Sequence record: OP617745.1
Length of the DNA stretch: 64,000 bases
Reading direction: 5' to 3' (one strand)
A program made the translations under genes and the position numbers. Numbering within the stretch: position 1 is the stretch's first letter; the number at the start of each line of letters is the position of its first letter. Of this stretch, positions 1,789-45,901 are shown one piece after another. The notes beneath the pieces are model-generated. The model was not told where the DNA came from. It was given only the letters and a program-made list of their open reading frames with translations, and did no database searches.

Positions 1789-3319
1789 ATACACCGACAA
1801 CACAACGACCGAGGAATCTCATATCAGGTTCCATCGGAACTTGTAGTTTTACTTTATCCAGTTCAATTGACATATTCTCTACTGCAACATTTTCATAAAA
1901 CCCATTTGACATAAGTTCTTGTACCTGTACTGACTTTGGTTCATCTACGGTAATGACCAATTCATAGTTGATACCATCACTTGAAGGTACCCACGAAGAC
2001 ATGTCAGAAATGTTTATTGTTTCGGAACCACTAATACGTTTCCATTTACCACTGATTTTTTGAATTAATGTATTAAAGCTAGGAGAAAAAGCTAACATGC
2101 CATTTTCACCTAAAGTATTATTGGATGCATCAATAAATGGTGGTCTAAACCCAATCTCTGTTAATTTAGTTTCCCCATTATAGCCATCAACCGTCGGATT
2201 TTGTGGGAAAAATAAAATTTCAGTATTTTTCCAACGCTGAACTTCTTTCGATGAGGCAGTTGCAGAAAACTCACCAGTTACCGAACCCCTGTGATATAAA
2301 CCAGTACTACTATCAGACCATTTACTTGGGTCAATTCCGGGGTTTTCAGTTGGATCATAGGTCTTGTTGTTAAATGTAATCGCTGGTTTATCAACAGTAC
2401 CATATATTGCTGCAAAACGTCCCTCAGCTTCTGAAATACCATCATCATACATTGCATCACCGGTTCTACGTAAACCATCTAAACCATATAAATCAAGTAC
2501 GGATTGTACATCGGAAACTGATGTTGGGAATTGTCGTCCATATGAATTTACTAGTTTATTATCAAATGTAACACTTGTGGCTGCAATACGGGTAGCATAC
2601 TGACGAAGACTTTGCCATTTAGTACCAGTACTGATGATCCAGTCACTATCACGTAAGCCTGGGTCATAACTAGCATTACCAACCTCGAATTGTTCTGTTA
2701 GATCTGGGTCTGATGTTAATGATATAAGACCTTCATGACCAGTAGTTGGGATTTGATCTACATTAAATCTTGCATAAGCAGAGGTAACTGATTTAGAACC
2801 ATTACCATCTGTGGTAAAATAATATTTAATTTCCAACCAGTCACCCTCACCTGATGGGTTAGTTGGTGTGAATATAACTGGTGATGTTGAAGGATTTGTA
2901 GTACTCATGTGAGTAGTAGCTATATCAACAATACCACGAGTTACGTAATAATCACCTGAATTGGTTGAGTCCGTTGGCGGTAGATTATCGTAAACCGAAA
3001 TTTCTGATGGTGGATCTACATCATCGGTATTTGGATTAAAAGTACCTTTATATGTCATACCATTCAATAATGTATCTGGTAAATTTGCAATTGAAATTTT
3101 ACCATTAGCATCTAATTGAACAAAACGTCGATATTCCACTGTATCATCTAATAATTGTAATGTACCTTCAAAAGCTTCCCATTCACTATTATAACGAATC
3201 ATTCCCGGACGTTTAATGTCATTTGGTGGATTTTTCAATAGTGCTTTTGGTAATTCCAAGAAACCATTAGTACTATCGATAATAACACCAGAATCACCAC
3301 GTATTCTATATATACTCAT
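1787..3319 (-). CDS. Putative virion structural (tail/baseplate-associated) protein
   Basis: 510-aa ORF rich in T/S/D/G; GMTYKGTFNP motif; ATAAATA late promoter upstream. Confidence 0.6.
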   Translation of the reverse strand: MSIYRIRGDSGVIIDSTNGFLELPKALLKNPPNDIKRPGMIRYNSEWEAFEGTLQLLDDTVEYRRFVQLDANGKISIANLPDTLLNGMTYKGTFNPNTDDVDPPSEISVYDNLPPTDSTNSGDYYVTRGIVDIATTHMSTTNPSTSPVIFTPTNPSGEGDWLEIKYYFTTDGNGSKSVTSAYARFNVDQIPTTGHEGLISLTSDPDLTEQFEVGNASYDPGLRDSDWIISTGTKWQSLRQYATRIAATSVTFDNKLVNSYGRQFPTSVSDVQSVLDLYGLDGLRRTGDAMYDDGISEAEGRFAAIYGTVDKPAITFNNKTYDPTENPGIDPSKWSDSSTGLYHRGSVTGEFSATASSKEVQRWKNTEILFFPQNPTVDGYNGETKLTEIGFRPPFIDASNNTLGENGMLAFSPSFNTLIQKISGKWKRISGSETINISDMSSWVPSSDGINYELVITVDEPKSVQVQELMSNGFYENVAVENMSIELDKVKLQVPMEPDMRFLGRCVVGV

Positions 3320-3354
3320 TTATATATTTCCTCAATAAGTAATATTGTATATGG

Positions 3355-3361
3355 TATTTAT
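3355..3361 (-). promoter_or_regulatory. Putative late promoter ATAAATA
   Basis: About 35 nt upstream of the start at 3319. Confidence 0.6.
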
Positions 3362-3483
3362 TTTTCGATAATAAAAAAAGTTATTCTTGGAATTATATGT
3401 TTACACACAAACTACGGTACTTTTTCCATGAAAAATATATTCTTTATTTTTAATAAATTATTATATCAAAATCTTGAACCGTA

Positions 3484-3831
3484 TTATACAGATGGTATAC
3501 TAATAAGGGGTTTCCATATACCGCCGTCTTTGATAAAAATATTAACGATGTTGGTTGTATCAATTTGGTAATATACATTACCATCTTCACCTGTACTGGA
3601 ATCTGGAATATCTGTTCCTCGTAATATAGTACTGTTTAATTTAGTATTAAGATGGTTTAATGTAACCAGATGTTGATCTTTGGTAGGTTCACCAGCTTCC
3701 ACTGGCATTAATAGTGTGCCTTCGTAATTATAAATTTTTACATCGGTACCATCTGTACTTAATTTTGCACCATTTTTACCAAGAACAAAATCCTTCTTCA
3801 TAGTCCCTTCTAAGTTAGAAAAAATTGCCAT
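3484..3831 (-). CDS. Hypothetical structural protein
   Basis: 115-aa ORF, GGAG RBS; GTDIPDSSTGEDGNVYY motif is common in fibre proteins. Confidence 0.6.
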   Translation of the reverse strand: MAIFSNLEGTMKKDFVLGKNGAKLSTDGTDVKIYNYEGTLLMPVEAGEPTKDQHLVTLNHLNTKLNSTILRGTDIPDSSTGEDGNVYYQIDTTNIVNIFIKDGGIWKPLISIPSV

Positions 3832-3843
3832 TATAAAATCTCC

Positions 3844-4959
3844 TTAGATATTGTCGCTAATAGGCAGAGTTGGTGCTTGCCATGATAGTGTACAAATAAT
3901 TGTCATATTACCATATGAACTTAAATTAACTGATTCATTAAAAATACAAGAAATTATTTCGTCTTTATCAGAAACAGTGTGATTTGTTTCATTGATTACA
4001 TATCTACTTTGCATTGATATATCAAAATAATCATAACCAGCAATAACAGTACCACCAATATCCTCATTTGCTTCCCCACTGAAACGAATTTTCATATCAG
4101 TTACTGGTGGTTCATACCCCTGTGTTACATTTACTTCGATATTAGTGACAAGATATCCAGCAGGACAAGTACCAATAACCAGTACTGTATTAGTGTATGA
4201 ATGATCGATAGTGTTCACTATAACAACTATATCCTTACCGGCATCTCCTTTATCACCCTTCTCACCTTGCAAGCCTTCTTTACCACGAAATTCAATGCCA
4301 GTGCTCCATTCTTTTTGTACTGGATCTGTATTTTCCACAATATCTACATAATATAATTTACCATCACTTGTGTTATAGAAACAATAATCTTCTGGAAGAT
4401 TAGTAATATCAGGGAAAGTGCTTCCAGTACTATCAATGTGGAATCTACCGCGTGGACCTACTTCACCCCTGAAGCTAATACCGCTCGACCACGTTTGAGT
4501 ACTGGAATCATAAAAATAAAGTTTTCCATCATTGGTATTATAGAAAGTATAACCATCAAATAAACCAGAAGTAGGGAATACCGTACCAGAACTATCTATA
4601 TGGAATGGTTTACCCTGTTCACCTTGCTCACCTTTTCCAAATTCAACCGAATTCCATGTGCTTGACTCGCCTGGATTTGAAGTTTTAAAATACAAAACAC
4701 TTGTGGAATTTGCTAAGCTCAGATAGCTCCACCCAATAGTTTTATCTGTATTAAAATCACTGTCAGGTATTTCAAAACCAATTTCGTTTGGATAAAAATT
4801 ACTTCCATCAGAACCGTCATGACCAACAACCAGACCTAAATCTTCAATGGTATTATCTGCATAAGTTACAATCAAATGACCATCTGTGCTGATTTTCATA
4901 CTTTTAATACCAGAATTATTACATGAGCAATTGGACCCATTATTAAATGAAATTGTCAT
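3844..4959 (-). CDS. Collagen-like (Gly-X-Y) repeat virion protein
   Basis: GEQGEQGKP, GEVGPRG and GKEGLQGEKGDKGDAGKD, alternating with a repeated FHIDSxGxxFP..FYNTxDGKLY module. Confidence 0.7.
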   Translation of the reverse strand: MTISFNNGSNCSCNNSGIKSMKISTDGHLIVTYADNTIEDLGLVVGHDGSDGSNFYPNEIGFEIPDSDFNTDKTIGWSYLSLANSTSVLYFKTSNPGESSTWNSVEFGKGEQGEQGKPFHIDSSGTVFPTSGLFDGYTFYNTNDGKLYFYDSSTQTWSSGISFRGEVGPRGRFHIDSTGSTFPDITNLPEDYCFYNTSDGKLYYVDIVENTDPVQKEWSTGIEFRGKEGLQGEKGDKGDAGKDIVVIVNTIDHSYTNTVLVIGTCPAGYLVTNIEVNVTQGYEPPVTDMKIRFSGEANEDIGGTVIAGYDYFDISMQSRYVINETNHTVSDKDEIISCIFNESVNLSSYGNMTIICTLSWQAPTLPISDNI

Positions 4960-29549: not shown

Positions 29550-32210
29550 TTACTGACATGCCTCAAGACGGCGTGCCATAAACTCGGCACGTCTTGTTGT
29601 TTGACCATACCATGCAGAGTTGCGAATGTGTGCCGCCGCCAGGCGATAGTTTCCCTGTGCCATAGCACCAAGCATACCCGTAAATTGTTGTACGCCACCT
29701 TTACCCATCTGGAATACCATCTCGACTAGTACAAGTTGAGCCATATATGGGGTTTTCATCTTATAAGATGCATAGATAGAACTGGCATCGTTGATTGCCT
29801 TTGTACTATCACGAACCAACATTGCATCAGCTTGTTCTTCAGTAATACCTGAACTGAAGTTTTCACCACGTAATACTAGGTGTCCATAACCAATAGTTGG
29901 AAACCCTCTACTATCAGTATAAGTCCAGAATTTATCATTTCTAAAGTACCCTTTTGCTTGTTGATATTGTTTAGTACCTTCAAACTCTTTGAGTTCTGGC
30001 ATTAATGTAGAATCACCCGGTTTTATTTGCCAATCCACCGCAGTTTTATCTACTGTACCAATATTCATTTCTTGTGGGGAGTAATTAACCACTGTACTGC
30101 TTTTTGATGTTCTTGGTCGTCTAACCGGAACATGACGAGACCCACGTTGTGCATAACCAGAACCAATTGTTTGTATCTTGGTACTAACAACCAGTTCATT
30201 ACTATCATTACCAGACACCACTACTGTGTTAGATGATGTTTCTTTAGTAGCTTTACCTTGTATTAGTGTTTTATTTGCACATTCTGAACCCGTACCAGTT
30301 TGGGTAGCATAGAATAGACCAGGATCTACCGTACCACTAAAACCATATAAATTGGCTGAATCGACGCGAATTTCAAATTTCAAAATACCACTTGCAGTAC
30401 CAATTTCCTGTCCTTTTTGTACTACATCTTTACTATACAATGAAGTTTTCAAACCATAAAATACTGATTTATACCCAGAATTATGTACAATATACACTGC
30501 ATTATTATATATACCAACTGTACCGGCATCAGGTGCAACTACAGTAGAATTACATTGTATTTCCCAGCCATTATGATCTGTTGTACTTCCTTTATTATCA
30601 GTTATATTTTTACCCCAATACCCGTACTGACGAATAATACCATTACATGGCATTAACATGTGAAGACCTTCATATGTTTGGGAATAACCATTCATACCAG
30701 TATCAGTCATTAAATCTTGTGTCTGCACTTGAGATGTTTCTGGGGCGTATGAGATGAACTGTACGGCCTCCTGTTGTTGAGCCTGTACCAACTGTGGCTG
30801 GACGTCATTCGCAGGTTGTGGATGTACTGGTGCCGTAGTTGAACCACTTCCTGAACCATTGTAACCTGTATCTACGGTACTACCATGATTTGATGCATCC
30901 TGCCAGTTTGAAATATTATGAATATGTTCATTAAGTCCAGCATTTGGTGTTTTAAAGTCCGGTGCCATAAATTCAGCAGTACCCTTATTACCTGAAGCAT
31001 CAACTGTAAGATTCTGCCCACCACCACTGATATTAGTGGATGAATCACCGATGATGTTAGCAGTTGAACCTTTCATGGAAACATTACTACCAGCAGTCAC
31101 ATCAGTACTACTACCGCTTTGTAAACGTAAAGAAGCAGCCGTCACCAATCGTAAATCTGCACCACTATTGATAACTACTTGTCCTTCTATTTTAGAATCC
31201 AATGAACCAAGTAATTCAAGTTTAGTATTACCACTAATACGAGCATTAAGATCCTGTCCAGTTTCTATATTACATGATCTACCAGCAACCATATTAATAT
31301 CCTGACCAGCACGAATGTTAATATTTTTATCGCAGTGAATATTAATATCTCCATCACCGGTAAATGATATACGAGCAGTACCATCACGATTGATTAATAA
31401 AATATCACCAGTTGCCTCAGATAACATCAACTGAGCACCACTACGAGTACGCAAAACAATACCTTCATTGGTTCTTGCTCCCACCCTGGTATCATTTACT
31501 GGGTTGTTGAATTGTGTATCCTGATAAGTATCTGGATCATCATCCCATGAAGGAACATTAAGTTCATCATCGGTATATCCATCATCTAGTACAAAACTAT
31601 TACCCCTTGGTGTACTCATACCATATACTGTACTAATCATTTGTCTGGTACTACTTCTGTTAGCTACACCAGCTTCTTTGTCGTATAAAAGGTTTTGTTT
31701 TTTTAAACCTTCAACGATAGGAACATTGACATATTTTTCATTTTGATCAGTACTGATGGTATTTCTGTCATAATCGGTAACTGGTAATGGAGAATCTGTA
31801 CCACTATATTGTGATGTAGTGGAAGTTGCCATACCTGGAACCATTGTGTTCATTCGTTGTTCGTATATACAACCAATCCAGTAAGCTTCATGTGATCTAC
31901 CCTGAATGAATATAACAATTACTGGACAGCCTACATCGGGAGGTACCGCCCAGAATCCATAACCTTTTGGATACTGACCGTATGCATCAGCACTCGGTAC
32001 ACCTGGGGTTTTACCTGCAAATGGAGACATATAAGAACATTCAATCCATGATTTCTTATCGTCTCGTTCACTTTGTGAACCCTGAACCCATACTTTAATT
32101 TTACCACTCATAGTAGGATCTCGGTTGTCCATAACAATCGCTACCTGTGGATAAGCTGGGTCAAAACGACCCAACTGTTCTTTTGCATACTGTTTACTTG
32201 TATCTACCAT
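29550..32210 (-). CDS. Baseplate hub/tail spike (gp5-like): OB-fold, beta-helix, degenerate M23 domain, C-terminal lysozyme
   Basis: DNRDPTMSGKIKVWV..YGFWAVPPDVG, LRTRSGAQLML, GxxN/S repeats, HNGWEI..VAPDAGTV..VQKGQEIG, EFEG..YTDSRGFPTIGYGH. Confidence 0.85.
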   Translation of the reverse strand: MVDTSKQYAKEQLGRFDPAYPQVAIVMDNRDPTMSGKIKVWVQGSQSERDDKKSWIECSYMSPFAGKTPGVPSADAYGQYPKGYGFWAVPPDVGCPVIVIFIQGRSHEAYWIGCIYEQRMNTMVPGMATSTTSQYSGTDSPLPVTDYDRNTISTDQNEKYVNVPIVEGLKKQNLLYDKEAGVANRSSTRQMISTVYGMSTPRGNSFVLDDGYTDDELNVPSWDDDPDTYQDTQFNNPVNDTRVGARTNEGIVLRTRSGAQLMLSEATGDILLINRDGTARISFTGDGDINIHCDKNINIRAGQDINMVAGRSCNIETGQDLNARISGNTKLELLGSLDSKIEGQVVINSGADLRLVTAASLRLQSGSSTDVTAGSNVSMKGSTANIIGDSSTNISGGGQNLTVDASGNKGTAEFMAPDFKTPNAGLNEHIHNISNWQDASNHGSTVDTGYNGSGSGSTTAPVHPQPANDVQPQLVQAQQQEAVQFISYAPETSQVQTQDLMTDTGMNGYSQTYEGLHMLMPCNGIIRQYGYWGKNITDNKGSTTDHNGWEIQCNSTVVAPDAGTVGIYNNAVYIVHNSGYKSVFYGLKTSLYSKDVVQKGQEIGTASGILKFEIRVDSANLYGFSGTVDPGLFYATQTGTGSECANKTLIQGKATKETSSNTVVVSGNDSNELVVSTKIQTIGSGYAQRGSRHVPVRRPRTSKSSTVVNYSPQEMNIGTVDKTAVDWQIKPGDSTLMPELKEFEGTKQYQQAKGYFRNDKFWTYTDSRGFPTIGYGHLVLRGENFSSGITEEQADAMLVRDSTKAINDASSIYASYKMKTPYMAQLVLVEMVFQMGKGGVQQFTGMLGAMAQGNYRLAAAHIRNSAWYGQTTRRAEFMARRLEACQ

Positions 32211-40907: not shown

Positions 40908-40936
40908 AAAAAGGGGAGCATTAGCTCCCCTTTTTT
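40906..40936. terminator. Bidirectional intrinsic terminator
   Basis: A-tract, GGGGAGC-atta-GCTCCCC, T6; overlaps the last codons of the 40921 ORF. Confidence 0.85.
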
Positions 40937-41952
40937 ATTATTGTCATAATTTCATTCAAAGATGTAGGTGATACGGTTTCGGTCCACCCATCACCGAATA
41001 ATTCTTTTGTTAAGTGTCTTGCTTTTATGGTTCTTTTTATTTCTTTTTCTATGTTAAATGCATCATTACAATTTTCATATACTTTGTGGTATACAACATT
41101 CAATTTGTACTTACATTTATTTTTATATGAACCCATTCTGTGTTTGATATTCTTTGTTATACCGAATTTATAACCAACTATATTATTATAATCATCAGAT
41201 ACTTCTAAAATGTATATACCTGAACTAAAATCAGAAGATTTATAACCATTTTTGTAACTAACAGAATTACACAAAGGACACCCTTTATCTCGCATAAAAT
41301 TGTCATATGTCATAGACCATGTATAATTGCATTTACAAGTTAAAATGACTTTACTAAAAACACCATTAAAGTTCTTTTCATCTATTAATTCAAATTTAAT
41401 GCCAGTTTCTTTGCTTTTAATTTTTAAATTCTCATTTAATTCATTTATACTGTATTTGTGAGTACCTGAACATTTCAAACAACCAATATTATTACTGAAA
41501 AATGAGTCATAAGTGGTAGTATTCCATTCGTATGCTTCAGAATGTTTAGTATTGTCATTGCATTTTAGTTTTAAATATGTTTTTGTTTTATTATATTCAT
41601 CAAAACCGAGGAATTCCAGTGTCCCACCTCGTTTAATGCATTCATTTTCCACATTTTGAATTAAAATTTCAGGTGTTAACTTATTCAATGAAGGCTTTCT
41701 GAACTTTTTTGATTCTATATTTCTCAGATATCTATATAATTTGTTAATTCTGTAATTATTATAAGTTATATTATCATGTGTTATTGAAGTAAGTGTATTA
41801 TTACCTAACCATTTTTCTTCAATAATGAATCCATTGAATTTTATATTAAATTTGGATAACCTTTTCGATAAATCGTTGAAATATTCCAATGGAGTTCTGG
41901 AATTATAGTTAATGTGAACTAAAATAATATCATCTGGTAAAGATATTATCAT
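40921..41952 (-). CDS. Putative homing endonuclease with C-terminal GIY-YIG-like domain
   Basis: CxxC repeats; GIYILEV...YKFGITKNIKHR...E..IK...FGDGWTET. Confidence 0.7.
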   Translation of the reverse strand: MIISLPDDIILVHINYNSRTPLEYFNDLSKRLSKFNIKFNGFIIEEKWLGNNTLTSITHDNITYNNYRINKLYRYLRNIESKKFRKPSLNKLTPEILIQNVENECIKRGGTLEFLGFDEYNKTKTYLKLKCNDNTKHSEAYEWNTTTYDSFFSNNIGCLKCSGTHKYSINELNENLKIKSKETGIKFELIDEKNFNGVFSKVILTCKCNYTWSMTYDNFMRDKGCPLCNSVSYKNGYKSSDFSSGIYILEVSDDYNNIVGYKFGITKNIKHRMGSYKNKCKYKLNVVYHKVYENCNDAFNIEKEIKRTIKARHLTKELFGDGWTETVSPTSLNEIMTIIKKGS

Positions 41953-42568: not shown

Positions 42569-42607
42569 AAAATAGGTCAGTACTGAAAAGTACTGACCTA
42601 TTTTTTT
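42569..42607. terminator. Perfect 16-bp hairpin with GAAA loop and T tract
   Basis: AAAATAGGTCAGTACT-gaaa-AGTACTGACCTATTTT. Confidence 0.8.
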
Positions 42608-42613
42608 CTGATT

Positions 42614-42829
42614 TTATCGCCCCTCATTTTGTTTACGGACTTTCTTGTTGTATGCTTTAACCATCAAGTCTCGTTCAGTTACTGGCATATTAAGTAACAT
42701 TTCATACGAGGTATTATCAATATATACAGCAGCTTCCATTAATGCTTGTTTAATTTCTTGCTGATTAAACTCTATGTCTCGTATGTATTTTTCTATTTCA
42801 GTTGCCTCTAACTGGAGAAGCTGAGATCG
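42614..42829 (-). CDS. Unannotated -1 frame extension (71 aa) of the gp26-like chaperone
   Basis: Open -1 frame RSQLLQLEATEIEKY...MPVTERDLMVKAYNKKVRKQNEGR*; no plausible start of its own; opens at the slippery heptamer T TTT TTC (42835-42829). Confidence 0.7.
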   Translation of the reverse strand, partial: RSQLLQLEATEIEKYIRDIEFNQQEIKQALMEAAVYIDNTSYEMLLNMPVTERDLMVKAYNKKVRKQNEGR

Positions 42830-43683
42830 AAAAAACGGGTAATATCATACACCAAATCTTCAATAACCCATTCATGATTACATTCACTACATTCAACCTG
42901 CATCGTGTGTTCAACACCAGTATTTTGCATTGTGTTGATTTCATCCTGAATAGTTTTAAGAACGTCTTTTGACTGATCTCCTACCCATTCTGAAATAAAT
43001 TCTCGTTCAGTCACTTCATCCCCGTCTGGAGTGATAATTTTAGAGATACTATAAACGATACCGTCGAAGTTAATTTTAGTGATAGGTTCAAAAATATCAG
43101 AAATGAATAGTTTTGCTCGGTCTTCATCACTTAACGACTCATCTAAATCGAGATATTTGGATTTGGACTGAATATTGAACATTCGCTCATTTATATCACA
43201 TTGTTCTTTCCATGTAAGTGGTTTAAGTTCAATACTTAATCCATTATTTAAAACTACAGTAGGGATTTCTTTAATATATTTTACTGTATTCAATAGCACA
43301 TTCAAATCACGTTCGATACGACCTTCATGGTCACATTCGGGACATTTTACATTAATATCATAAGTATATTCTTTGGTTGCAACTTTAATTGCAATAAGCA
43401 GTTGTTCGATATCATTGATGTATAATTCATCTGCATTAAGGACGTTCGGGCAGCAATTTTCAATAACTCGTGATACCGCATCCCCGGACATAAGCATATC
43501 AGGAGTATTCAGTACTATTTCATCACGAGCACTGCGAGCACATACCCCAACTTTAATACCTTTATTTCCTAATACACCATCGGGATATTTAATTACATCA
43601 TTTGAAATAAGTTTAGCACTAAGTACTTCAATTTTTGTGTACTTGGCTAGTGGGTTCATCTTACTCATAAAGACTCCAATCAA
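42808..43683 (-). CDS. Baseplate hub / tail assembly chaperone (T4 gp26-like)
   Basis: NPLAKY, DEIVLNTPDML.SG, D..QLLIAIKVAT, CPEC and CSEC, FF near the C-terminus; true start may be a downstream ATG (MSKMNPL). Confidence 0.75.
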   Translation of the reverse strand: MIGVFMSKMNPLAKYTKIEVLSAKLISNDVIKYPDGVLGNKGIKVGVCARSARDEIVLNTPDMLMSGDAVSRVIENCCPNVLNADELYINDIEQLLIAIKVATKEYTYDINVKCPECDHEGRIERDLNVLLNTVKYIKEIPTVVLNNGLSIELKPLTWKEQCDINERMFNIQSKSKYLDLDESLSDEDRAKLFISDIFEPITKINFDGIVYSISKIITPDGDEVTEREFISEWVGDQSKDVLKTIQDEINTMQNTGVEHTMQVECSECNHEWVIEDLVYDITRFFDLSFSS

Positions 43684-43691
43684 TGAACAAA

Positions 43692-43717
43692 ATAAATAAT
43701 CTATATGACATATTTAT
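43692..43717. promoter_or_regulatory. Divergent overlapping late promoters
   Basis: ATAAATA at 43692-43698 (+) and at 43711-43717 (-), each about 40 nt from its gene. Confidence 0.55.
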
Positions 43718-43738
43718 AAATGTTTAAAAGGATAAAAA

Positions 43739-45901
43739 ATGGCTGGTACAAGTACGGATTATCTATTACAACAATTGTTAACCAGTAATGAAAAAGCTAA
43801 TGATAATTTATCTGCGATGAGAGATTTATTATCAGAAAATTTGAAAAAAAACGGTTCAAATAATAACAATAATAATAATCCAGGAAACGGAAATAATAGA
43901 AGAAAGAAAGAAAAGATATCATTAAATGATGCTTTAAAAAATATATCCAGAGATGTTAGTGGATTTAGTAGAACTCTCATTAACGGTAGTGCGGATGTTG
44001 GAACTGTTACGAATTCACTTGGTACCGGAATGAGTAGTGTAATCGGTACATTAGGAAAGGCTGTTCCAGCTATTAGTGGTGTAACTACTGCATTCCAGTT
44101 ACTAATTGAAGCAGGACTATCTGTTTATAATTATCTAAATCAACAACTGGAAATGTATAATAAAATTAATTCCAGTGGTGTTAGTTTATCAAATGGTATG
44201 AACTCTATTCGTACTGGTAGTGCTAATGCGTTAATGAGTATGGACAAATTCGGTAATTCCGTAGTAAAACATGCTGGTGTTATTGCACAATTAAATGGTA
44301 TATACGGTGATGGTGTTAAGGAATATGGTGATTTGCTTGGAACATTACAATTAGCACAGGATAAAATAGGTATATATGGTGTATCACAGGAACAAATGGC
44401 AGACTTAACCGCGAGGAATATTAAATTCCAGAAACAATTTGGTGGTGCAGAATTAATTAGACAAACTAACCAGGAAAAAAGCACACAAGAATTTATTAAA
44501 AATATGACATCTTTTAGTAAATCAATGGGTGAATCAGTTGATGCAATTTTAAAGAAAACTCAGGATTTTGATAATTCACTTGATGCTCGTGGTTTAGAAG
44601 CTGCATTGGAAAACTGGGCTGGATTAAGTAATAAAGCTGCTACATTAACTACTGATGCATTTATTCAAGCCGCTGCTGGTATGGGCGATGCAGGAAAATC
44701 TTTTTTTAAAATAATTTCATCACAAGCTGTCACTGGTGCATTACCCACTGAATATATGACTGGTGTTATTGCAGAATTTGCCGAAGAAAACAAAAAAATG
44801 TTTATGGGTGGTATTACTGATGCAAAGGAAATACGCTCAGCTAACATCAAATGGGTTAGAATGCATAAAGATCAGATTAAGCGTGACATGATGAACCAGA
44901 TACAACTTGGAAACATCGAAGCTGCTAACTTCAACCGAAATCTTCTTGATCTGGAAGCGTCTGCAAATGATCCAAAAAATGGACCAAAACAACGTTTAGA
45001 GGAATTAACTAATAGATTTAATAATTGGATTAGTAATACATTTATAAAGCCATTTAATCTTTTAATGGATGCTGGGGTTACATGGTTATTAGATATTTCA
45101 GATCAAACAACATCATTTAACCAATTTATATCTACTGTATTCAGTCAGGGAATCGACAAAATAATGAGTATGGTAACTAACTTTTTTAAGAACTTTCCAG
45201 TACTTAGTGATATAGGAAAAACTTTATTCGGTGATTCTTATAATACATTGGTTGATAATGTTGGTGGTTTTATTGGTAATTTAGTAAAAATACCTATACA
45301 ACTGATATCAGTTGTAACAGATATATGGAATGGTAATTTAGCTGGTGCAAGGGAAACTGTACAAAATGCAATTGCTTCATTTAAACAGAATTTCTTGGGT
45401 ATGTGGGAAGGTATAAAAGATATCAAATTCAGTTTCAGTGACGTTAAAGACCGCTTGGTTAATATTGTAGAAACACTAAAAAATAAATTAATTAATGCAT
45501 TTGACATTCTTAAATATGTTTTCGGTGTCAGTGATGAAATGCCAAAAACTGAAAATACAAAAACACCAAGTGCTGAAAAACCAAAAAATGAAAACATAAA
45601 TACACCCAGTAACAGTAAACCGACTGTTAATGATAATAACAGAAAACAACCACAAGTTGATCAAAATGCTTCTAATTATACCCCACCAACTCGTGTGGAT
45701 GAAGCTCAAGATAATTACAAAAAATCTCCTGATGATGAAAAAGTTGATAATAATTTACAACCAGTAAATTACGATGAATCAATGGTTGAATTATTAGGAC
45801 GTGTAACATCTGCGTTAGAAAAAGCTAACGAATACAATGTACAGAATTCAAATTATCTTAGAACTATATCTGATAATACTCAAATACAACGTAATAGTTA
45901 A
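43739..45901 (+). CDS. Putative tape-measure / baseplate hub (gp29-like) protein
   Basis: 720-aa, predicted helical, Ala/Gly-rich with periodic W/F; adjacent to the tail chaperone gene. Confidence 0.55.
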   Translation: MAGTSTDYLLQQLLTSNEKANDNLSAMRDLLSENLKKNGSNNNNNNNPGNGNNRRKKEKISLNDALKNISRDVSGFSRTLINGSADVGTVTNSLGTGMSSVIGTLGKAVPAISGVTTAFQLLIEAGLSVYNYLNQQLEMYNKINSSGVSLSNGMNSIRTGSANALMSMDKFGNSVVKHAGVIAQLNGIYGDGVKEYGDLLGTLQLAQDKIGIYGVSQEQMADLTARNIKFQKQFGGAELIRQTNQEKSTQEFIKNMTSFSKSMGESVDAILKKTQDFDNSLDARGLEAALENWAGLSNKAATLTTDAFIQAAAGMGDAGKSFFKIISSQAVTGALPTEYMTGVIAEFAEENKKMFMGGITDAKEIRSANIKWVRMHKDQIKRDMMNQIQLGNIEAANFNRNLLDLEASANDPKNGPKQRLEELTNRFNNWISNTFIKPFNLLMDAGVTWLLDISDQTTSFNQFISTVFSQGIDKIMSMVTNFFKNFPVLSDIGKTLFGDSYNTLVDNVGGFIGNLVKIPIQLISVVTDIWNGNLAGARETVQNAIASFKQNFLGMWEGIKDIKFSFSDVKDRLVNIVETLKNKLINAFDILKYVFGVSDEMPKTENTKTPSAEKPKNENINTPSNSKPTVNDNNRKQPQVDQNASNYTPPTRVDEAQDNYKKSPDDEKVDNNLQPVNYDESMVELLGRVTSALEKANEYNVQNSNYLRTISDNTQIQRNS

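Follow-up and report, generated by a model that had tools for sequence, protein, structure and literature searches.

A predicted -1 frameshift in gene 26 of a Klebsiella jumbo phage very probably yields a longer protein corresponding to T4 gp51

Many long-tailed phages share a conserved frameshift in the tail assembly chaperone gene, as in lambda gpG/gpGT (Xu, Hendrix and Duda 2004; summarised in PMC5009743). [quoted passage not shown] In T4, gp26 and gp51 are listed as hub assembly chaperones, and gp51, the 'hub assembly catalyst', is required for assembly but absent from the particle (PMC3004832). T-even phages encode the two as separate, divergently transcribed paralogous genes. A 'short gp51' (T4-GC_12) of cyanophages and marine vibriophages was described as a truncated stand-alone gene about 20% of normal length, and gp51 as 'missing' from Aeh1; no recoding was proposed (Sullivan et al. 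2010, PMC3037559). Slippery heptamers of the U_UUU_UUC type are also used by IS3-family transposases and other bacterial -1 frameshift sites (PMC4066793), which usually rely on a downstream pseudoknot or hairpin, or on an upstream SD-like stimulator. We found no description of a frameshift in gene 26 in full-text literature searches, which did not cover subscription papers, or in targeted reading of frameshift reviews and tools (PMC5009743, PMC10885494, PMC3711429) and T4 papers, nor a counterpart of the frameshifted chaperone pair described for T4-like phages.

We analysed a 64,000-nucleotide stretch of record OP617745.1 (the window), which is Klebsiella phage Muenster/RaK2. The initial annotation had noted, from the sequence alone, an in-phase slippery heptamer and an unlisted -1 frame at the end of a gp26-like gene; this observation is correct to the base. 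The features of the locus are as follows.

43711-43718, minus strand: T4-type late-promoter-like motif TATAAATA, about 43 nt upstream of the gp26 start codon
43674-43677, minus strand: Shine-Dalgarno sequence GGAG, five bases before ATG 43668
42808-43668, minus strand: gp26 homologue, zero-frame product (short form, 286 aa, stop TAG 42810-42808), a T4-type baseplate hub assembly chaperone with two conserved Cys pairs
42845-42847, minus strand: TGA closing the -1 frame 9 nt upstream of the heptamer
42829-42835, minus strand: slippery heptamer T_TTT_TTC in X_XXY_YYZ phase, six codons before the zero-frame stop; proposed site of the -1 tandem slip
42614-42829, minus strand: -1 frame ORF, 71 codons (42829-42617) plus TAA (42616-42614), encoding the gp51-C-terminal-like domain of the long form
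42614-43668, minus strand: inferred span of the predicted long form, 280 zero-frame codons then 71 codons in the -1 frame (about 351 aa; the joined sequence was not written out)
42569-42604, no strand assigned: 16-bp terminator-like hairpin with T-runs on both strands, 10 nt after the -1 ORF stop
43739-45901, plus strand: divergent neighbour, a 720-aa virion structural protein, putatively the tape measure or gp29 analogue

The first ATG, GTG or TTG of the -1 ORF is codon 31 (ATG 42739), so that a listing of open reading frames shows only a 41-aa ORF. We tested whether the arrangement could arise by chance. The long ORFs of the window hold 19,090 codons and 114 in-phase X_XXY_YYZ heptamers. After an arbitrary codon the -1 frame stays open for a median of 3 codons (mean 5.7), and for 71 or more codons in 0.19% of cases. 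The heptamer at 42835-42829 is the only one of the 114 followed by a long -1 ORF; the next best is followed by 28 codons. The arrangement is thus far beyond chance.

The initial annotation had proposed that loss of the heptamer and of the -1 frame in relatives would count against a frameshift, and we therefore examined their conservation. Both are present in every non-T-even relative examined (about 190), down to about 21-27% protein identity. All 24 named jumbo phages, 80/80 related metagenomic loci, 80/80 cyanophage-type loci, four named cyanophage or T4-like genomes and one Aeromonas phage have an in-phase slippery heptamer at this spot (T_TTT_TTC, T_TTT_TTT or A_AAT_TTT) and a -1 ORF of 56-82 codons. 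In 18 named jumbo phages the heptamer lies 1-11 codons before the stop, and the -1 frame is closed 0-42 nt upstream and then open for 69-79 codons. The same holds in Phosso, RsoM2USA, SCTP-2, CM1, Xoo-sp13 and the cyanophage S-BM1, in a KVP40-like vibriophage and Aeromonas AS-yj, and in S-CAM22 and S-8S56. It also holds in the 80 IMG/VR loci, at 25-100% identity, and in the 80 cyanophage-type loci; related loci were collected with an alignment and with a single cyanophage protein as queries. A tblastn search with the -1 peptide found 74 phage records at 51-100% identity, all overlapping the 3' end of a gp26 gene.

The heptamer is kept as a signal, and not only as Phe-Phe. It is identical at every base in 15 of 15 aligned enterobacterial and Vibrio jumbo phages, and is invariant at synonymous and flanking third positions while the preceding amino acid varies. 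One clade (19 loci) has replaced it with a different slippery heptamer, A_AAT_TTT, which changes the amino acids but stays slippery. The one T-even examined, which has a separate gp51, keeps Phe-Phe but encodes it as TTC TTT, which is not slippery. All three heptamers belong to the H_HH.U_UU.Y class, among the most efficient -1 motifs in E. coli (PMC4066793). The coding-frame signature switches at the heptamer: nucleotide variation upstream of it peaks at position 3 of frame 0 (0.43 against 0.32 and 0.31), whereas downstream, including the first 33 nt, it peaks at position 3 of the -1 frame (0.58 against 0.41 and 0.26).

It is possible that the downstream ORF is an ordinary separate small gene, as most GenBank records annotate it, translated by its own initiation or by termination-reinitiation coupled to gp26, with the heptamer merely encoding a conserved Phe-Phe. 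Independent initiation had been named in advance as the other outcome that would overturn a frameshift. In favour of a separate gene, many records annotate a small 'hypothetical protein' or 'gp51' here, an ATG overlaps the gp26 stop in several genomes (TAATG or ATGA in 121Q, Turkey5, XbC2, Kaldavass, BF and Yen9-04), a start codon lies at codon 4 of the -1 ORF in 39 of 80 cyanophage loci, and Phe-Phe is an invariant protein motif even in the T-even. However, the annotated starts disagree between genomes, and the first start codon wanders from codon 2 to codon 49: there is none before codon 31 in the window phage, none before codon 32 in AS-yj, none before codon 49 in some metagenomic loci, and none at all in PA5oct. 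Yet the peptide is conserved from its first codon, and best in its first 12 residues (median pairwise identity 0.33 over residues 1-12 and 0.18 over residues 1-38). Independent initiation therefore cannot explain the ORF. In addition, the Phe-Phe codons and the preceding third base are fixed as a slippery heptamer in about 190 loci, and in the named phages the -1 frame opens only 0-42 nt before the heptamer. We consider a separate small gene unlikely, although a free small peptide could be made in addition in relatives where an ATG overlaps or lies near the gp26 stop (121Q, Turkey5, XbC2 and BF).

An artefact, such as an indel error in a homopolymer run, where such errors are common, or a decayed fusion gene, is effectively refuted by the distribution of the arrangement. 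The same frames are seen in ten independently sequenced RaK2-like genomes and in about 190 divergent loci from many projects, both frames show coding-type variation, and none of 68 protein homologues is a fused, in-frame long version.

It is also possible that the long form is made by transcriptional slippage, the RNA polymerase adding one extra U in the T-run, so that a fraction of mRNAs carry the -1 ORF in frame. The site is a homopolymer of 6 T here, 7 T in XacN1, CM1 and Xoo-sp13, and 9 T in RsoM2USA, and runs of U are noted as prone to such slippage (PMC4066793). The product would be identical, so the comparative data do not separate the two routes for T-run sites. Six T is, however, short for efficient slippage judging by reported cases, although this was not tested here. 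In addition, the 19 A_AAT_TTT loci have no long homopolymer but a classical tandem-slip heptamer, and the phase of the motif relative to the zero frame is strictly kept in all loci, which matters for ribosomal but not for polymerase slippage. Transcriptional slippage is thus unlikely.

We next looked for elements that might stimulate a ribosomal slip. No significant RNA structure was found downstream: the single-sequence fold was not better than shuffles (z = -0.25), and the alignment fold of 13 phages gave -0.55 kcal/mol with no covariation. A short Leu-codon/Glu-codon hairpin seen by eye was not in register between genomes and was dropped. No SD-like element was seen on reading the upstream sequence. 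The efficiency of the shift may therefore be low, although a stimulator is not obligatory for phage chaperone frameshifts.

We analysed the relationship of both parts of the gene to known families. The zero-frame product matches Pfam PF12322 (T4_baseplate) at E 2e-20 (73.8 bits against a cut-off of 24.5) and phrog_150 at E 1.6e-30. Its residues C109, C112, C260, C263, F279 and F280 are invariant or nearly so across jumbo, cyanophage, vibriophage and T-even members, and it is about 80 aa longer than T4-type gp26. Its AlphaFold2 model has pLDDT 89.2 and pTM 0.86, and BFVD fold matches to T4-like hub assembly proteins reach E down to 1e-22. RaK2-like genomes hold only one PF12322 gene. T4-type gp51 itself matches PF12322 (E 1.2e-55 over residues 1-201) and then has a C-terminal helical domain in the same frame; it is thus a gp26 paralogue plus that domain, a natural in-frame fusion.

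The -1 pieces match this C-terminal domain. Pieces from relatives hit phrog_634 at E 1.8e-30, 8.7e-20 and 1.7e-11, and hhalign against T-even gp51 gave E 2e-7 for cyanophage pieces and E 1.6e-5 (probability 79%) for jumbo pieces. The latter match runs end to end at the C-termini but covers only the last 37 or so columns. It became significant only with a 33-sequence gp51 alignment, a comparison with a single gp51 sequence being uninformative, and the jumbo profile matched the cyanophage -1 profile more weakly (E 0.0016). The window piece has no direct HMM hit to phrog_634, and its small-ORF relatives carry no precomputed match to Pfam PF28602, the entry for the gp51-type C-terminal domain; it falls instead in a different, unnamed family, phrog_18291 (E 5.5e-31). 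The cyanophage and vibriophage 'short gp51', and the 'missing' gp51 of Aeh1, are the same -1 ORF behind the same heptamer. The link that the initial annotation had drawn between gp26/gp51-type genes and frameshifting chaperones is thus borne out as far as gp51 is concerned, and its interpretation as a whole is supported, with 'G/GT-like' holding as a functional analogy only.

Indeed, neither sequence nor fold places gp26 in the lambda/HK97 chaperone family. No chaperone family appeared among the Pfam, PHROG or NCBIfam hits (NCBIfam has no model for either part), and PDB sequence searches with the gp26 and -1 profiles found nothing below E 0.1. Foldseek searches of the PDB with two confident models found no significant match: the HK97 chaperone 2ob9 was returned at E 1.6 (probability 0.41, TM 0.49 on the target), and was not recovered with the gp51 model. 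We therefore make no claim of fold homology. The protein is also twice as large as the lambda-type chaperone and has two Cys pairs, and the partner of its long form is unknown. Gene order leaves the comparison undecided: in the window the gene is adjacent to, but divergent from, the putative tape measure gene, and not between the tube and tape measure genes, whereas in S-BM1 the gene that follows directly weakly matches a tape measure family (phrog_167, E 2.6e-5).

Taken together, these results suggest, with high confidence, that gene 26 of this phage is decoded in two ways. In this view, most ribosomes read the zero frame to TAG and make the 286-aa chaperone, while a minority pause with tRNA-Phe in both the P and A sites on T_TTT_TTC, both tRNAs re-pair one base back, and translation continues for 71 codons in the -1 frame. 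The long form would comprise the whole PF12322 domain plus a small helical C-terminal domain, and would be the equivalent of T4 gp51, the short form corresponding to gp26. The pair would work like lambda G/GT: a fixed ratio of an abundant short and a rare long chaperone, sharing one body and differing by a C-terminal adaptor, acting in central hub and tape-measure assembly. The anatomy of the site, its conservation, the switch of coding frame at the heptamer and the homology of the -1 piece to the gp51 C-terminal domain are direct results of our analysis; that the shift is ribosomal, how efficient it is and what each form binds are inferences. All the evidence is comparative: there is no protein, ribosome-profiling or transcript evidence, the virion proteome table of phAPEC6 could not be mapped to this gene, and neither binding of the short part to the tape measure and of the long-form extension to the tube protein nor the absence of both forms from virions was assayed. 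None of the roughly 30 records inspected annotates a slippage, and our reading corrects the annotation of this gene pair in every non-T-even T4-like and jumbo phage genome examined. It gives the T4 superfamily a counterpart of the frameshifted chaperone pair of other long-tailed phages, and turns the old question of what gp26 and gp51 do in hub and tape-measure assembly into a testable short-form/long-form model. It also explains why cyanophage and vibriophage 'gp51' is only about a fifth of normal length, why gp51 seemed absent from Aeh1-type phages, and why T4 gp51 is a paralogue of gp26 that acts without entering the virion.

A broader possibility, which we regard as somewhat more likely than not, is that a single frameshifted gene 26 is the ancestral and still dominant state of the whole T4 superfamily (cyanophages, KVP40-like and Aeh1-like phages, and RaK2-, PA5oct-, Atu_ph07- and XacN1-type jumbo phages). 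The T4 arrangement of separate genes 26 and 51 would then be derived, made by duplication and fixation of the shifted frame. If so, the puzzling 'catalytic', non-structural role of gp51 is simply that of the rare long form of a G/GT-type pair, and T4-like phages would follow the general rule of a frameshifted tail assembly chaperone, using an unrelated, zinc-ribbon-containing fold. BFVD shows the gp26 fold also in SP-15, CP220, phiRSL1 and Ackermannviridae.

The 720-aa divergent neighbour matches phrog_14121 ('virion structural protein'), and the RaK2 annotation notes similarity to a tape measure protein; its role as a tape measure was not tested here. A large virion protein gene sits in the same divergent position in many of the jumbo relatives examined. 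The phage encodes a gp55-type late sigma factor, but the late-promoter-like motif TATAAATA is not enriched in the window (8 found, 14 expected), so that only its position is suggestive. The terminator-like hairpin follows the -1 ORF, with none after the zero-frame stop (2 terminator-like sites found against 0.5 expected in shuffles).

The region is 100% identical to Klebsiella phage Muenster and at least 99% identical to RaK2, K64-1 and seven other Alcyoneusvirus records, which are 346-kb jumbo myoviruses with a T4-like morphogenetic core. Nearby genes include those for the portal gp20, the prohead protease gp21, the major capsid protein, gp46/gp47 and the late sigma factor gp55. A 343-aa ORF after endonuclease VII (40921-41952, minus strand) carries MUG113/T5orf172 (GIY-YIG-like) and treble-clef zinc-finger domains; as it is absent from this position in several relatives, it may be a mobile homing-endonuclease-like insertion.

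We first analysed the anatomy of the proposed frameshift site, treating the two frames as separate pieces. It consists of the following elements.

ATG 43668 to TAG 42810-42808, minus strand: a 286-codon gene preceded by GGAG, which matches Pfam PF12322 ‘T4 bacteriophage base plate protein' (E 2e-20) and phrog_150 ‘baseplate hub'.
42835-42829, minus strand: T_TTT_TTC in X_XXY_YYZ phase, six codons before the stop of that gene; the -1 frame has a TGA 9 nt upstream.
42829 to TAA 42616-42614, minus strand: a -1 ORF of 71 codons, in which the first ATG/GTG/TTG is codon 31.
42604-42569: a 16-bp terminator-like hairpin that follows the -1 ORF; there is none after the zero-frame stop.

The initial annotation had described an in-phase heptamer six codons before the stop of a gp26-like gene, a TGA closing the -1 frame just upstream and a 71-codon -1 ORF without a good start of its own, and every one of these elements is present. 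To estimate how often such an arrangement would arise by chance, we scanned the long ORFs of the window, which contain 114 in-phase X_XXY_YYZ heptamers in 19,090 codons. In this 33% G+C genome the -1 frame stays open for a median of 3 codons, and for 71 or more codons in 0.19% of positions. The gp26 heptamer is the only one of the 114 followed by a long -1 ORF; the runner-up, a G_GGA_AAC at 29649-29655 (minus strand), lies 32 codons before the end of a long ORF and is followed by a -1 ORF of 28 codons.

Loss of the heptamer and of the -1 frame in related phages had been named in advance as an outcome that would count against the frameshift; we found the opposite. The 71-aa -1 piece, searched alone, finds 74 phage records at 51-100% identity, and each match overlaps the 3′ end of a gp26 homologue. 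We compared 18 divergent genomes (Muenster, 121Q, Turkey5, A4, EJP2, Hallingskeid, Munch, CBB, GAP32, XbC2, Kaldavass, BF, Yen9-04, XaC1, Vibrio 2.275.O, Atu_ph07, PA5oct and XacN1), all of which have an in-phase T_TTT_TTC (T_TTT_TTT in XacN1) 1-11 codons before the stop, with the -1 frame closed 0-42 nt upstream and then open for 69-79 codons. Phosso, RsoM2USA, SCTP-2, CM1 and Xoo-sp13 behave the same way, with -1 ORFs of 76-82 codons. Of 80 IMG/VR loci at 25-100% identity, 80 have the arrangement, 56 with T_TTT_TTC, 5 with T_TTT_TTT and 19 with A_AAT_TTT. In the latter metagenomic clade (loci L051, L056, L058, L064 and 15 others, at about position 1990-2000 in each) the zero-frame stop follows one codon later, and the -1 ORF has 77-79 codons in those loci not cut off by the contig end. 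The amino acids of this clade differ, but the sequence is again a classical slippery heptamer, a natural swap of one such heptamer for another. All three heptamers fall in the H_HH.U_UU.Y class, which Sharma et al. found among the most efficient -1 motifs in E. coli (PMC4066793).

Independent initiation of the small ORF, which had likewise been set out beforehand as a possible refutation, is not supported by the comparison, and we consider a separate gene very unlikely. GenBank annotators either leave the region empty (RaK2), call an opposite-strand ORF (Muenster), or call a small ORF with a different start in each genome. The Muenster call, a 39-aa ‘hypothetical protein' with an RBS (42645-42764, plus strand; 10037-10156 in L001, the Muenster locus), lies inside the conserved -1 ORF and is probably a spurious call filling the unannotated gap. 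The first possible start codon in the -1 ORF is codon 2, 3, 5, 6, 13, 19 or 31 in the named phages, is absent in PA5oct, and is as late as codon 49 in metagenomic loci. Yet the -1 peptides align colinearly from their first residue, and their first 12 residues are the best conserved part, with a median pairwise identity of 0.33, against 0.18 over the first 38 residues, in 77 distinct sequences. A hydrophobic residue occupies position 5 in 70 of 77, and an acidic residue position 11 in 71 of 77. The zero-frame tails after the heptamer vary in length (1-11 codons) and in sequence. Across 15 genomes, nucleotide variation peaks at codon position 3 of frame 0 upstream of the heptamer, and at position 3 of the -1 frame downstream of it, already within the first 33 nt; the heptamer and the next base are invariant.

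We then asked how the -1 piece relates to gp51. Cyanophage S-BM1 has the same heptamer at the end of gp26, with a 64-codon -1 ORF, only the last 31 codons of which are annotated as ‘gp51'. The whole -1 piece matches phrog_634 ‘baseplate hub assembly catalyst' from its second residue (E 1.8e-30). The same holds for a KVP40-like vibriophage and for Aeromonas phage AS-yj, where the 56-codon -1 ORF (2193-2366 of the AS-yj locus, L028) is unannotated, has no start codon before codon 32 and matches phrog_634 at E 1.7e-11. Of 80 cyanophage-type loci, 80 carry T_TTT_TTC, have the zero-frame stop exactly one codon later and have a 60-68-codon -1 ORF, as do S-CAM22 and S-8S56. Sullivan et al. (2010) noted that cyanophage and vibriophage gp51 lack the first 200 or so residues and that Aeh1 lacks gp51, but did not propose recoding (PMC3037559); the AS-yj ORF probably explains why gp51 was reported missing from Aeh1-type phages.

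In the one T-even examined (IME339), gp51 (249 aa) and gp26 (208 aa) are separate, divergent genes, and gp25 starts at the gp26 stop. The gp26 Phe-Phe is encoded TTC TTT, so there is no heptamer and no -1 ORF. T-even gp51 is itself a PF12322 protein (E 1.2e-55 over residues 1-201), followed by a C-terminal domain predicted as four helices (residues 196-249; model pLDDT 91.7). Precomputed domain tables list a Pfam family, PF28602, on the C-terminal region of T-even gp51 homologues (P0069-P0166); it is not recorded on the small-ORF relatives of the window's -1 piece, and its definition was not examined. Profile comparison places the -1 pieces on that C-terminal domain: cyanophage pieces give a probability of 94% and E 2e-7, and jumbo pieces a probability of 79% and E 1.6e-5, with the C-termini aligned end to end. 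RaK2-like genomes contain only one PF12322 gene, and no homologue in the protein database is a fused long version. The -1 ORF is therefore their only source of a gp51-type C-terminal domain.

The best reading of the mechanism is tandem -1 slippage of two tRNA-Phe on T_TTT_TTC, which would yield a minor long form of about 351 aa beside the 286-aa short form. We found no stimulatory RNA structure, which fits a low, fixed ratio but leaves the efficiency unknown. Transcriptional slippage on the T-run would give the same protein and cannot be excluded for this phage; in Ralstonia phage RsoM2USA the site is a run of nine T (1968-1976 of its locus, L021), long enough for transcriptional slippage, and the 82-codon -1 ORF there is unannotated and has no start before codon 48. 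The strict phasing and the A_AAT_TTT clade, however, argue that the ribosomal route is the general one.

The function of the two forms is inferred, not shown. T4 gp26 and gp51 are listed as hub assembly chaperones, and gp51 is needed for assembly but absent from the particle (PMC3004832), which parallels the short and long forms of lambda G/GT (PMC5009743). The window gene lies next to, but divergent from, a 720-aa virion protein that RaK2's authors likened to a tape measure. In S-BM1 the large gene directly downstream of the gp26/-1 ORF pair (2745-4198 of its locus, L025) matches ‘endolysin' families strongly and a tape measure family only weakly (phrog_167, E 2.6e-5), which would give a chaperone-then-tape-measure order like lambda G-T-H. 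The interpretation in the initial annotation, that this gp26 behaves as a G/GT chaperone and links gp26/gp51-type genes with frameshifting chaperones, is supported, but as a functional analogy only.

None of the roughly 30 GenBank records inspected annotates a slippage, and our searches of the full-text literature, including the main recoding reviews and prediction papers, found no description of it, although subscription literature was not covered and prior description cannot be excluded. The conserved chaperone frameshift is already known; what appears to be new is its occurrence in a protein family for which no relationship to those chaperones was found. The result added here is that, in this view, T4 gp26 and gp51 are the two forms split into two genes.

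The gene is a member of the gp26/gp51 family (PF12322), but it is not shown to be a member of the lambda/HK97 chaperone family. No sequence match to the latter was found, and a confident model (pLDDT 89) has no significant PDB neighbour; the HK97 chaperone appears only at E 1.6 and does not recur with the gp51 model. It would, thus, work like G/GT but is a different protein. The fold itself is widespread in large myoviruses (76 BFVD matches at E <= 0.001), including many non-T4 ones such as Bacillus SP-15 and BCD7, Campylobacter CP220, Ralstonia phiRSL1, Ackermannviridae, Leptospira LE4 and Erwinia Special G, whose genes were not checked for a frameshift. Some gp26 homologues (662-1537 of L007, the locus of Yersinia phage fHe-Yen9-04, and the proteins P0032, P0040 and P0042) are misnamed ‘Lead, cadmium, zinc and mercury transporting ATPase' or ‘ribosomal protein S27E', presumably because of the two Cys pairs, which are zinc-ribbon-like.
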